A DNA stretch of 62,047 nucleotides, the filler included, from Choristocarpus tenellus KU-1152 (taxonomy: Eukaryota > Protista > Phaeophyceae), in the NCBI GenBank assembly GCA_964200185.2. It is 11 parts of 11 records of this genome, joined end to end, with 100 filler letters (N's around TTAATTAATTAA, not from the genome) between each part and the next. Parts side by side here need not be neighbours in the genome. Positions count along the whole stretch, not along the records: positions 1 to 5,923 come from CAXNAD020009403.1; 10 more parts are not named here. One strand, 5' to 3'. Positions 1-5,923 of this stretch are shown here, in pieces. The notes beneath the pieces were generated by a model that saw only the letters and a program-made list of their open reading frames with translations, searched no databases and had not been told where the DNA came from. Numbering within the stretch: position 1 is the stretch's first letter; each line of letters starts with the position of its first letter. A program made the position numbers and the translations under genes.

Positions 1-1616
1 GGGCGGCCCATTTATTGCAAACAGGAGAAGATATGGAGGGACCCAACCATCTGGCATTTTCTCTGGAGGGGGGAGAATAGGGGAAACCTGGGGCGGAGGT
101 CTCCCCCCTGATCCAGGAGAGGGACTTCCTGGCTGGACCTTTCTGGGATGGCGCTGGCAGGACTAGAGGTGGGCCCTCCTGATTCAGACTCCACCACTTT
201 AGTCTCAGTCGCCGTTGGACTTTCGACTTCGTCCTCCCCCTCCAACAACGTCGATGATGCTCAGCAATCCTCGATTTCTCCTGTTCCTCCCACAACCGGT
301 GGCACAGCTTCTGGAGACAGTCTGTCTCCTGCTCCCCAGACCACAACTTTCTTCCGGGAACAGGACTGGGAAGCAAGAAAAGTGTTGGATGGGTGCATGT
401 AAAGATGCTCCTCATTGAGCGTTGTGTTTATGGACTTCAGGTATGTAACCTACGAAAGTGAAGTGCAATACAGCATGAATTCAAGCAACATCTACCGTCC
501 TACTCACGTCAGCCAGAGGGAGATGTACACGTTGGTGACATTCTTCTGTGCCTTAGTCAGAAAATATTACGTACTTTACCCATCCATCACTCCTTCCTTC
601 GAATGTCAATCGAACATGAAGCTGGCCACGCCATCAGGAGAAATTAACACCATCAGGTTGTAACCTCCCGAACTCGTCCAGGGGTGATACTCAAATGTGC
701 TGCCAGTTCCTTCATATTCCGTCTTTATCCACGTTGTGTCCGTTTCCATCTTCCGTCTCTGAAAAGATCACAAATTGTTGTCAACAAACAGAGGAAATTG
801 GAGAGCCATATCTTACCACATTCTCACACTCACTCTTCATTTTACCATGATAAAAATATAGGAATGTTTCACCTTGGAAATATTGGTTAAGACAACGACC
901 TCTACAGGGAATCCACGTCATAGGAGCAAAAATATGTCAGAACTTGAAGCCCCTCACGTTTATGGATTTGTATCCTAATCTGAAATATCATTCTTGACAT
1001 CATATATTTGATCATTTCATGAATCTGAGAATAAAATATGATTCTACGTTGGTGTTTCAAATCTTAAGAGTTAGTAGGTTGTTCTTATTTCTTCAATTGT
1101 AACCTATCTCAAAAAGAGTCTGGAACGTTGAAGGAAAAAGACTTCGGTTTTGAATTCTCCTTCAGCTCTTACTCCTTCATTTGATCATTTGTATGACAGA
1201 GAGAGTCAGTCAGTTCAAACACCATTTATTTGTATTTGTAGTCTCTTGTTTGCGAAAAATTTCGTACCTTGAAACATGGGTGGTGGGGTGTATCAGAGAA
1301 ACTATTGTGCCAAGACAAGTTCGTTTTCCGTGTAGATGATGTTGTCCCACACCAATTGACCTAATTCTGGAGGCTAACCAAGTCGAATATTGGGACTGGA
1401 AGTCAATGATGGATGGAGTGGGTGAGTGATAAGCACACTAGTCTTTGAAGTCTTGTAAGTAACAAGAGAAAGTTTCCGGGATAGAGGTGGAAGAGCACTG
1501 GTAGTGGTACTACTCTATATGTTCGGAAAATAGGAATCTCCATATGGGGAATATTCAATCGCTTCTCCTATTTAACGACTTCCTTCTTCGAATGCCGTGA
1601 AGCAGTACCTTCGCAG

Positions 1617-1800
1617 ATGGAAGGACGTGATCTAGACGAGAATGTCTTGGATACCCTCTTCCGTTCCATGGGTGGAACGTCGTGGCGTCACAACCAAGGG
1701 TGGGACAGCACGACTGATGATCTAAGTGTACGACATGGCGTGAAGGTCAACTCGGAAGGACGTGTGGTTGAACTCGATCTTTCTTCTAACAACCTTAAGG
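1617..1800 (+). CDS. Orphan exon encoding an LRR N-terminal cap plus first LRR (brown-algal LRR-ROCO/LRR-protein type); possibly a pseudogene fragment
   Basis: CAG acceptor at 1614-1616, phase-1 donor G|GTAAG at 1800/1801. Translation (D..VL..LFRSMGG..W....GWD...DLS.RHGV.VN.EGRVVELDLSSNNLKG) matches the LRR N-cap typical of brown-algal LRR genes. The usually conserved W of WHGV is R, and no further LRR exons were seen in this block. Confidence 0.75.
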
Positions 1801-2887
1801 GTAAGTGCATGAGCTGACAACTTTTAAATATCGGAGTTACTGTAAGCTGTGCTTTGCAATTGGCTCTTCCAGGATGAAGAGTACACAACACATTTCTCCG
1901 CCACTCTCATCTTCCTTGTGCTAACATCTGAGAAAAAAGGGAGTAGACGTTCTCGATGGTCGTGTCTTTGTCTGGACCGGATCATACCTGCCATACAACT
2001 CCTTCTCATGGGATAGGAGTTACACCCGTTTTTTAATGTCGTCCTCTTGGTGATGATGATAGGTTTACGGGTTATGTATGAGATAGTGAACAAGTTGTGT
2101 GTGTGTTGAGTGGTCATGGCAAATGTGACACAAAATGTAGTACATGGTAGATTCTCTAGTGTGGGCCGACACGTCCATGGTGGTTAGGTGCCGATATTTC
2201 GTCCATCCTCGATCTTCTTTCCTCTCATTACTCTTTCCGCTAGTGTCTCAGTTTCTACTTTGTGGGTGGTCCGGAGCTCTTCTTAGCTGGCAAAGGTGTG
2301 GGTGGTAGATCCCAGGTTTTTTTATATGAGGCAGGATAATAATAAGGGTGTGCGCAAAAATCACTTGGTGTTTGTGCGGAAGGTCTGTTGTTATTCATGA
2401 AATATGTGCTATGAAGTGATATCATGTAGTATGCTTACTGATAGATGTATAGTGCATGCCGGTATGGTATGTTCTCAATATATTGTAAATGTTACACTGT
2501 GACTAGCTTTTGAAACCGCTTTTACTAGTATTTCCTCACTACCGAAGATTGACATGGTAACTGCGATCGATGCTATTGAAGACACTGACTGGTAGGTGTC
2601 AGTGCCCTCGACTTTCAATATACTTGTATGGTACTTTGTTTTGGGTAGTTTGTGCAGTTGGTGAAGCACGGTCCAACAACTTCCCTATTGTTTGCATCAA
2701 AATATCTTCTCGACACACGAATGTGTATGATAATGATAGGTTCTAAAACCTGCTCTAGCACAGTCTCGCTAACACGATACGGTCATTGCACATAGACATC
2801 TTTGTAGCATGTAATGATTTAACATTGTATGCCCTTCTGGTATTGCACTCTACCTTCCATAGTCTAATCAATCTATTGAACGAATAC

Positions 2888-3029
2888 TGTGCAAGATAGG
2901 CTAGGTAGTCTATGGGGTGTTACGTGTTTAGTGACCAGCACTAAACAACAGCCTATGCAATAGAGAGTTACTCTAATATAGTTTTTTGCTTTATGTGGTG
3001 TGGATATGTTTATTAGCGAAGTGAGCACA
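2888..3029 (+). repeat. LTR-like copy A (inverted relative to B and C)
   Basis: TGTGC...GCACA termini. The first 64 nt match the reverse complement of 5696-5759 at about 56/64 (hand alignment). Confidence 0.8.
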
Positions 3030-3220
3030 TCCCTCAAGATCGGGGGGTGCTCTGCGTTGTTATCTATTGCCTTGGTGCTTTATGTATTGCCCTCGGTGCT
3101 CTCTCTTAGTATCTATTGCGTACGTCAGTAAACATGTCAGAAATATGCTTGTACAGTTACACTGCGTCAGCCACTTACATTAAATAATGCCAGCAAGTTT
3201 GCTGCACGCTCATGGGGGAG

Positions 3221-3410
3221 TGTGCTTATATTAAGCAGAAATAAAACACAACCTATCGAAACTCGAAACCATCCAGACTTGAACCTGTTACTCTAAACAT
3301 ATGGAAACAAGTCCTTGACAATTACTCTACTCAGTCAAGACTTCTGTTGTTTAATTCTGGTCACTAAACACGTAACCTTGCACAGTATACTGCCTAGCCT
3401 ATATTGCACA
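3221..3410 (-). repeat. LTR copy B (3' LTR of the Copia pol)
   Basis: TGTGC...GCACA termini, preceded by a PPT on the minus strand, homologous to 5598-5759. Confidence 0.85.
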
Positions 3411-5597
3411 CTCCCCCATGATGGTGCAGCAAAGTTGCTGACAAAAGCTCACTCTCGATGCCAAAGCACAGAATGCACAAAATCAGAGATAATTTTTTTG
3501 CGTAAAGATTTGGATAACATGTTAGTCATTTGCTTGTGTGTTGAAATATATTCAATGTGAAGTATTCCTTGATGTACATACTCCCTTGTACACTATAACT
3601 TCATGTCCACATGCTTGGTCCTGCCATTGAATCCTGTGATGGTTTCCGCTTGAATGGTGCCATGGTTGTCACGAAACCGGAGAGTCTGGCCCTGTAGTAC
3701 ACCAATCTCCCCCAGCATGCCTCAGATGAAATTGCAGTGGCGCATGCCACATGTCATTGCCGTCCACTCTGCCTCTGAGCTGGAAGGGGTGACTGCGCCG
3801 TGAAGCCTAGAGTGCCAGGGGATCGGTGATCTGTTGAACAGGATTATGTACCCTGTAACACTTCCACGTGTTTGTTGGTCAGTGCCCCTGTCAGAATCTC
3901 TGTACCCTACCAGGAGTTCTTCATCCCTCTCGTTCATATCTTTGTCCCCTCGATCATAGTGGATGCAGACATCATGTCTCCGTACTACGTAGAGCAGAAA
4001 CGTGTTGCAGTCCGCGTCAGTGCCGCATGCATGGAGATGTCGCCCTGCGTCCCAGTTCACGAACGCTGTTAGCTAGATGCGGTTGAGTCATGCCTGCGAG
4101 AAACGTGGGTTGTGTTAGGATACTGGCATAGAGGTATATGGTAGGATTTAGTTCCTCTTCGTGGTTTTGTCTGGCAGAGAGGTCCATCCCAGGGTGTAGT
4201 GGTGTAGATGTCTCTCGTACTTCTGTGGAGCCCATCCCGGCCGTGACAATGCTTTTAGCATACATCTGTTGGCCCAGGGTGATGCCATCCTACCCCACAG
4301 TGATGCCCATCCCAATTAACTTGTCTGGCGTACCTAGGTCTCGCCCCTCGTATTTCTCCAGCAGGGATGCCCTTATCCTCTGGATCTCCTCTGTGAAATC
4401 CCCAGTGGTGACAGTGTCATCCACGTAGGTAATTACGATGGCAATGCGTCCATCTTCACTCTTCTTGAAGTAGAGATATTATCGTGTTGACTTCTTGTCC
4501 CTCCTTCTGAGAGAATTGTGCCCCTTAATTCATGAAACCATTCTATGGCTGACTGCTTGAGCCCATAGATTGCTTTCTCTCCCTTGACGACGCGGCCGTC
4601 TGGAAGCTTCAGCCAGATGTTCTCCTGCAGATCTGCGTTGATGTAGGCCTGTGTGAAATCTAGGGCGTGTATGCTTCAACCTTTGTACGCTGTGACCGAT
4701 ATGACGCATCTTAGTGTGTTGTATCCCACTACTGGGCTGAAGGTTTCAAAGAAATCAACTTCAGAATTTTGTTTAAACCCTTGTGCCACGAGTCTTGCCT
4801 TGTATTGTTACACTGCCCTGGCTGCCGAACGCTTGATCTTGAAGATAAATGGTGTTTTGATTGCATTCCGTCCTTGGGGTAAGGCTTTGTCACTAAACGG
4901 CCACTTCTGCCATAACCCTTCCATTTCCTTTTCCATGGCCTCCTGCCGCTGATCTGCATCTGGCCCACCCAAGGCCTCCTCTGTAGTAGTTGATTCTTCT
5001 GCACCTGTTCCCACTTCTCCAATGATAGCACGACAACAATGACGCATACTGCATATGGCTGTGTAAGGGTTGATATGGAGTGGTCCATGTCTGTTTCTGC
5101 ATCTTCTTCTTCCTGGTTACACAGAGAGGTGTAGGCTACCCGCTGGCATTGTTTCAGCGTGGTAGATTTCCACCGCTCAGAGTGTGGGGCCAAGTGCTTG
5201 CTTGCCATCTGTGCAACCCATCCATGCGCTGGCGTTATCCCATCCTGGGAATTTCTTGACTTTGGGGGAATTCTGTGCGCTTTACACCTTGAGCCCCACG
5301 CCCAATATTTAGGCTCTCACCCTCACTCATGTCTGCCTCACTCCCTTTTGTGGAAGCCTCTTCTTCATTATGTTTATCCATATCCATGTCTTCAACAAAC
5401 TATGACTCCCCAAGTATGTCCAGCTCTGGCTCCGCCACTATCTTCCGCAGTTTGTTTTCAGGCTGGAAAGTCACCTGTGCTGAGGTCACCAGCTTGTCTT
5501 CCTGCAGGATCCATACATGCCAGCATCGTAACATCCTGTCGTGTCCTAGAAGTATCCCCCTCTTTGCATGTACGTAGAACTTTGTGAAGGGGAATCG
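3411..5597 (-). pseudogene. pol: Decayed Copia pol (integrase C-terminal tail, reverse transcriptase, RNase H); gag, protease and integrase core are missing
   Basis: Fragmented motifs on the minus strand: GILLGHD..WHVW..LVTSAQVTF (IN C-terminal); YKTRLVAQGFKQ, LDFTQAYINADL, KAIYGLKQS, TYVDD (RT); GYRDSD..TRGSVTGY, SSSEAEW, TKHVDMK (RNase H). Many stops and frameshifts. PPT GGGGGAG abuts the LTR at 3410. Confidence 0.93.
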
Positions 5598-5759
5598 TGT
5601 GAGGCTCATAAGAAATTAATTTATCCAGACTCGTACCTGTTGCTCTAAAAATAGAGGAACAAGTCGTTGACAATTATTCTACTCAGTCAACCCTTCTGTT
5701 GTTTAGTGCTGGTCACTAAACAGATAATGTCCTATAAACTACCTAGCCTATATTGCACA
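5598..5759 (-). repeat. LTR copy C (5' LTR position of the Copia pol)
   Basis: Diverged direct repeat of 3221-3410. Starts TGTGCAATATAGGCTAGG on the minus strand; inner boundary approximate. Confidence 0.8.
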
Positions 5760-5923
5760 AATACTATGCCCTTGAAATATAGAAGGACCTTGTGTTTGTC
5801 CTTTAGGCATCCGTATGACAGTGGAAGTGTGTATAACCAAGTACCATACAGAGTGAGGTTGGGAGTATCAGCAACTGGGAAATAATCTGTGTTGATAAGA
5901 ATAATTTATCCAGTGTGTGTTTT

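Follow-up and report, generated by a model that had tools for sequence, protein, structure and literature searches.

How can an LTR retrotransposon come to lie in a chromosome with the same end of its long terminal repeat (LTR) at both of its outer edges? This question is raised by a decayed Ty1/copia-type element of Choristocarpus tenellus KU-1152 (Phaeophyceae; assembly GCA_964200185.2), found in a stretch of 62,047 nucleotides (nt) made of 11 joined parts, which we refer to as the window. The element lies in the first piece (positions 1 to 5923, CAXNAD020009403.1), which is eukaryotic DNA. Between two copies of the pentamer AATAC are three LTR copies, here called A, B and C, and the outer two, A and C, are inverted relative to each other, each with its U3 terminus facing the host DNA. 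Our results suggest that this locus is the fossil of a single aberrant reverse-transcription or complementary DNA (cDNA)-joining product of a Ty1/copia element, a molecule with two U3 ends that was inserted once; we place the probability of this reading at about 0.5.

Target site duplication and LTR copies

The 5-nt flanks of every candidate unit were compared, and a full match was obtained for one unit only, that running from A to C, which has AATAC on its left (2883-2887) and on its right (5760-5764) by direct reading of the sequence. A match at all five positions has a chance of 0.0013 at the local base composition. The remaining units gave 3/5 for C alone, 2/5 for A up to the polypurine tract copy described below, 1/5 for A to B, 0 to 2/5 for A alone and 0/5 for B alone. 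Copia integrases generate 5-bp target site duplications (TSDs) at TG...CA ends. The conventional unit of this element, with B and C as its direct LTRs, has no such duplication, its flanks being GGGAG and AATAC (1/5). The original prediction had placed AATAC around the whole of A to C and had denied the C-pol-B unit a duplication of its own, and on both points the flank comparison agrees with it. A 9-mer, TATGCCCTT, occurs at 2828-2836, 47 nt to the left of the left AATAC, and again at 5765-5773, directly to the right of the right AATAC. A longer target duplication based on this 9-mer was rejected, as the flank match was not above that of shuffled sequence; its place beside the TSD is odd.

LTR-B (3221-3410, minus strand; TGTGCAAT...AAGCACA) is the 3' LTR of a minus-strand element and is common to both arms of the structure. 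LTR-C (5598-5759, minus strand), recognized by its homology to B, is the 5' LTR of the same element; it is secure at 5623-5759, and its inner U5 edge is uncertain. The two are direct repeats with 85% identity at aligned positions and 34 gap columns, and their ends are of the TG...CA type (TGTGCAAT...CACA), as expected for the direct LTRs of a Ty1/copia element. The LTR begins with TGTGC and ends with GCACA, and so carries its own terminal inverted repeat.

Copy A (2888-2951, plus strand), found by repeat alignment, consists of LTR nt 1-64, beginning at the U3 start (TGTGCAAG...) and pointing inward. It forms an inverted repeat with 5696-5759, the outer end of C, in which 56/64 positions are identical (88%), and it matches LTR-B at 57/63 positions. 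Both outer tips of the A-to-C unit are exact U3 termini (TGTGCAA...). In outline the locus thus has what would be looked for in a terminal inverted repeat (TIR) element, namely 64-bp inverted ends with AATAC on both sides, and the ends themselves are LTR U3 termini and not TIRs of the transposase type. These TIRs of about 64 bp, both of them U3 ends, had been described in the original prediction, as had LTR-B and LTR-C in their present places and orientation. LTR-A had been drawn there as 2888-3029, and of this only the first 64 nt are homologous to B and C. The part from 2952 to 3029 is no more similar to B and C than shuffled sequence is (p 0.6-0.8), which leaves a 142-bp LTR unsupported; the same applies to everything from 2952 on, the rest of the spacer included (p 0.6-0.98).

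Within U3 there is a palindrome at nt 38-60 with a perfect 9-bp stem and a 5-nt loop (TGTTTAGTG ACCAG CACTAAACA), located at 2925-2947 in A and at 5700-5722 in C. The hairpin of copy A has a predicted energy of -7.5 kcal/mol (z -4.3); A and C have retained it (z about -4.3), and in B it has decayed. The homology of copy A stops at LTR nt 64, 4 nt beyond this hairpin. The hairpin may be a regulatory site or a site at which reverse transcriptase pauses, and a role in both pausing and template switching is plausible.

The inverted polypurine tract and the abnormal joint

Directly upstream of the U3 start of LTR-B lies the native polypurine tract (PPT) region of the minus-strand element (3411-3443, minus strand), whose GGGGGAG purine run abuts TGTGCAAT. 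A second copy of this region, in inverted orientation, is present at 3188-3220 (plus strand; ...CATGGGGGAG), with 29/33 positions identical to the native one; when the shared TGTGC is counted, the inverted repeat extends to 38 nt at 89%. LTR-B is consequently flanked by PPT copies in inverted orientation. On one side the junction is the natural PPT|U3 junction. On the other side the joint is unnatural: the PPT copy runs, exact to the base, into the reverse complement of LTR-B's U5 end. This joint has a microhomology of 5 nt, TGTGC, which can be read as the U3 start following the PPT copy or as the reverse complement of the U5 end of B. The pentamer fits either partner because the LTR starts with TGTGC and ends with GCACA.

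The 3' border of the PPT is the site cut by RNase H and the start of the plus strand; at the last base of U5, minus-strand DNA has its 5' end and the finished plus strand its 3' end. The abnormal joint hence coincides with both of these landmarks of retroelement replication. The inverted PPT copy is the key to the whole structure. The segment between A and B had been reported as a 190-bp non-coding spacer; it is indeed non-coding, with no open reading frame (ORF) in the filler that makes up most of it, but it is not anonymous, its last 33 nt being the inverted PPT-region copy that had been missed. Along the minus strand, LTR-C comes first, then truncated integrase, reverse transcriptase (RT) and RNase H, the PPT and LTR-B, and after these, all reverse-complemented, the PPT copy, the filler (X) and U3 nt 1-64. 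This architecture can be read as a pair of element arms that meet tail to tail, with one 3' LTR in common and a U3 terminus at each outer end, the left arm being only 333 nt long.

An inverted arrangement of this kind might be produced if the contig merged reads from different copies of one family. The contig is short and lies in a repeat, and related proteins are found on contigs of only 4-11 kb, as such an assembly artefact would predict. We nevertheless give this explanation little chance. The odd joint has just 5 nt (TGTGC) in common, too few for a misjoin based on overlaps or k-mers, and a perfect TSD is not expected from a chimera. Moreover, the source species was sequenced with long reads within the Phaeoexplorer project (10.1101/2024.02.19.579948).

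The degenerate pol region

The minus strand between B and C carries a degenerate Ty1/copia pol (3452-5615), identified by Pfam matches and by a translation with many stops and frameshifts. RVT_2 (PF07727) was matched by three colinear pieces in different frames within 4293-4807 (minus strand; E values of 1e-9, 3e-8 and 3e-4), which cover profile positions 33-73, 78-139 and 152-208 and are split by frameshifts. Upstream (5') of the RT on this strand is a retroviral integrase SH3-like domain (PF25597; 5403-5615, minus strand; E 8e-6; profile positions 27-70 of 73), with a score of 26.1 bits that falls just below the Pfam cut-off of 27 bits. This is the gene order of Ty1/copia elements; the catalytic core of the integrase is absent. 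These two families were the only Pfam matches of the element. An RNase H-like region is present at 3725-4072 (minus strand), and a piece from the RNase H side had five protein matches, all from Choristocarpus tenellus by their NCBI name, with identities of 65-79%.

The inner edge of LTR-C directly abuts integrase coding sequence, starting at profile position 27, and no primer binding site (PBS) is readable there; the integrase domain is truncated right at this edge, which indicates that the PBS is gone. Neither gag nor protease was found, there being no sequence between LTR-C and the integrase C terminus. The place where LTR-C meets integrase is the second LTR edge with an abnormal joint. The deletion that removed PBS, gag, protease and integrase core starts no more than about 15 nt from the U5 end (5590-5615, minus strand). 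A PBS-like motif common to the sequences following the U5 ends of A, B and C was considered and was not significant, the flank of C being integrase coding sequence. The minus-strand element is a deleted, non-autonomous Ty1/copia copy, and the deleted minus-strand pol of the original prediction is borne out by its Copia-type RVT_2 pieces and truncated integrase.

Origin of the two U3 ends

Across the 64 nt common to all three copies, A has one private difference, B has four and C has five; with these singleton counts, A is no outgroup to B and C. Pairwise mismatches were 6/63 for A and B, 8/64 for A and C and 10/64 for B and C, so that the U3 copies differ by 9-16%, and values in the same range were obtained for the two PPT copies (4/33) and for the core of B and C (11/73). 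These counts fit a history in which all copies would have been alike at one moment, having come from one source, and would have decayed together since. The event is old, as judged by an LTR divergence of about 15%.

The uniform divergence bears on another explanation, in which a normal minus-strand insertion that has lost its left TSD happens to lie beside the 333-bp left block, an older and unrelated piece of a related element, with AATAC matching by chance. Nests of transposable elements are common, and a p value of 0.0013 is not negligibly small given that very many windows are screened and the case was picked for its oddness. Such a coincidence is in our view improbable, because A has on its outer side an exact LTR terminus, right next to the matching pentamer, the junction of the PPT copy with B is precise to the base and the outer flank of B (GGGAG) mismatches that of C; the levels of divergence are also uniform.

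A different history would place the rearrangement after integration. An older plus-strand element, consisting of A, an internal region, a PPT and a 3' LTR, would have been flanked by AATAC, and a related element would have entered in or beside its 3' LTR in the opposite orientation. Deletions guided by TGTGC/GCACA microhomology would then have stripped pairs of inverted LTRs, leaving the plus-strand PPT joined to minus-strand B and minus-strand C joined to AATAC. Closely spaced inverted repeats are unstable, both abnormal joints lie at 5-nt LTR terminal repeats that are usable as microhomology, and in an insertion as old and rich in indels as this one (34 gap columns between B and C) later deletions are certain. 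We still regard this history as unlikely. It requires an insertion at an exact place followed by two independent deletions, each exact to the base, and it does not lead one to expect that A, as part of an older or different element, should be no more diverged from B and C than B is from C. The repeat and flank comparisons in the window found neither a remnant of a fourth LTR nor a second TSD.

Insertion of a single DNA with two U3 ends is the best reading because the TSD brackets only the A-to-C unit, the tips are exact U3 termini and the three U3 copies are equally diverged. On the same three grounds, the original inference that a two-U3-ended DNA had been inserted as one unit is supported in part. 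Among the routes by which it had been suggested that this DNA arose, a one-off aberrant product of reverse transcription is favored by the position of the joint at replication landmarks, with its 5-nt microhomology, and by the lack of a PBS and the heavy decay.

Under this single-insertion reading, the joint would have formed during or just after reverse transcription. A nascent plus strand ending in PPT plus TGTGC-3' may have mis-annealed to the 3' end (...GCACA-3') of another plus-sense strand, and extension by reverse transcriptase from that pairing would yield exactly the observed order of PPT, inverted LTR and PPT, with one LTR in common. Alternatively, the same product could have resulted from end joining between the U5 end of one cDNA and a cDNA broken at the plus-strand discontinuity between PPT and U3. 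The 64-nt U3 piece and X would then derive from further template switches, or from later deletions in the short arm. Integrase may have used the two U3 ends, which have the same TG...CA-type termini, and thereby produced the usual 5-bp duplication. The product would have been dead on arrival, lacking a PBS and having broken genes, and would have decayed since, to the point that identity between its LTRs is now about 85%. In the right arm there is no PBS and, if that deletion predates the event, priming by tRNA was impossible and an aberrant primer becomes plausible.

Several points weigh against an origin by a single insertion. There is one copy only. Two or three template switches, or later deletions, are needed to account for the 333-nt left arm and for the stop of A at nt 64. 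The 5-nt microhomology of the LTR ends could equally guide deletions in the genome, and a flank match with odds of 1 in 770 can be due to chance when many windows are screened for oddities. Finally, the model presupposes that a Copia integrase can pair two U3 ends efficiently.

A recurrent form of this mechanism can also be envisaged, in which Copia derivatives lacking a PBS regularly have their minus strand primed by the nascent PPT-primed plus strand, through pairing of TGTGC with GCACA, and thereby escape as integrable tail-to-tail cDNAs with two U3 ends. We consider such an escape route a very long shot; if it exists, further genomic copies are expected of the joint between plus-strand PPT and minus-strand LTR or of the whole composite.

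The filler X and the possibility of a mobile family

X (2952-3187) is a 236-nt, non-coding segment of 41% GC that is unrelated to the rest of the element, as judged by shuffled-sequence controls and by ORF, Rfam and tRNA searches. It has no similarity to B, to C or to the rest of the window, it contains no ORF, and it matched no Rfam family or tRNA. We accordingly rejected the interpretation of X, or of A past nt 64, as a diverged LTR (not above shuffles), and that of X as coding sequence (no ORF) or as a known RNA or tRNA (no match). The left arm, taken as 2888-3220 or as 2888-3410, was also considered as a terminal-repeat retrotransposon in miniature (TRIM) or a large retrotransposon derivative (LARD) and was rejected as such, because it contains no two LTRs in direct orientation; A and B are inverted relative to each other, and only 64 nt are common to them. 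A 20-nt unit (TTATCTATTGCCCTCGGTGCT) is present in two tandem copies at 3060-3100, and the motif TATTGC recurs several times within X.

At 3030-3043 (TCCCTCAAGATCG), X resembles the reverse complement of the PPT (TCCCCCATGAGCG) at 10/14 positions when the alignment is anchored at a distance of one base from a putative GAGCACA end (3029). In a free alignment the likeness does not reach significance (p 0.2), and the anchor at 3029 is itself unsupported as the end of LTR-A. If true, it would mean that the locus holds a second joint between a U5 end and a reverse-complemented PPT.

This likeness, together with the 64-bp TIRs and the TSD, would suit a lineage that by design carries PPT-complementary sequence next to U5 or has inverted ends, in the manner of DIRS or self-priming elements, and whose composite form is mobile through its inverted U3 termini. 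Such a design seems to us very improbable. The likeness at 3030-3043 fails as a free alignment and depends on an end of A that the LTR comparison does not support. Furthermore, this is a single decayed copy with no PBS, gag, protease, integrase core, tyrosine recombinase or transposase, and a TIR-like mobile family is unsupported.

Comparison with known systems

The element resembles other Ty1/copia elements (Pseudoviridae) in having RVT_2, with the integrase encoded upstream of it, LTRs of the TG...CA type whose tips form short inverted repeats, a PPT right next to the 3' LTR and a 5-bp duplication. It differs from them in its outer ends, both of which are U3 and which are inverted, in its three U3 copies and in the presence of one LTR between inverted PPTs; it also has no PBS, gag, protease or integrase core. 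DIRS elements encode a tyrosine recombinase and produce no TSD. The present structure is like theirs in outline only, in that its terminal repeats are inverted and an internal region is complementary to its ends; the Copia-type pol, the integrase remnant and the 5-bp TSD set it apart from a DIRS-like retroelement. Tandem ("complex") elements also have three LTR copies within one pair of flanking duplications. Their copies are all direct and arise by unequal recombination, whereas the third copy here is inverted and 64 nt long.

Integrated proviruses of HIV-1 with inversions, large deletions and unequal LTRs have been described and were ascribed to template switching (PMC9278108). Our element is similar to these defective proviruses in that it is a rearranged, dead-end product that has been integrated with normal host junctions, but the proviruses retain one U3 and one U5 terminus. 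In a limited literature search we found no described case of two U3 termini with one common 3' LTR, and open-access text yielded no element in a chromosome that has a TSD and whose outer LTR ends are inverted.

Autointegration provides a further parallel. Virus-like particles of an Arabidopsis Copia element accumulate inversion and deletion circles formed by autointegration (PMC7197481), and Ty1 autointegration is stated there, with reference to Garfinkel et al. (2006), to prefer the PPT-associated flap. Such products resemble our locus in having an LTR U5 end joined in inverted orientation to internal element DNA, here at the PPT border. They are circles off the chromosome, with joints that show a short duplication of element sequence, whereas the element studied here is linear and chromosomal. 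An autointegration inversion product was thus rejected: the inverted joint between U5 and PPT is present, but B to C lacks a duplicated element pentamer (GGGAG versus AATAC) and the DNA is linear in the chromosome. On paper, simple autointegration, whether to an inversion or to a deletion circle, cannot yield a minus-strand LTR between a plus-strand and a minus-strand PPT, with a TSD around two U3 ends. Inversion through recombination between inverted LTRs was rejected for the same failure.

Should the locus indeed stem from one event, it would record that a Copia integrase is able to bring two U3 ends together and insert them with the normal 5-bp duplication, and that replication intermediates can be mis-paired through the short inverted repeats at the tips of LTRs to become tail-to-tail cDNAs. 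Both points would be relevant to studies of reverse-transcription errors and of defective proviruses. The locus is also a caution for LTR annotation pipelines, which presume that the LTRs within a TSD are direct. No general claim can be rested on one unverified locus, which is most likely a curiosity and not a new kind of mobile element.

Sequence searches and host context

Ten ORFs of the window had no exact match in the collection searched, and a word search of proteins returned no candidates for the integrase piece. Pattern scans for two conserved U3 motifs gave no match for either motif in metagenome contigs and none for either in viral contigs. Among prokaryotic genomes, a 22-nt U3 pattern had one exact match, in a Dehalococcoidia metagenome-assembled genome (OY730475.1; 2817-2838 of L001), with no likeness outside the pattern; in a collection this large, about one such match would be expected to arise by chance.

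The insertion has no evident consequence for the host, the copy being dead and old. A probable host exon with a leucine-rich repeat (LRR) segment is located at 1617-1800 (plus strand), as suggested by a weak Pfam match to LRR_10 (E 1e-3). This exon ends near 1800 at a GTAAGT-like splice donor, and the retroelement lies about 1 kb downstream.

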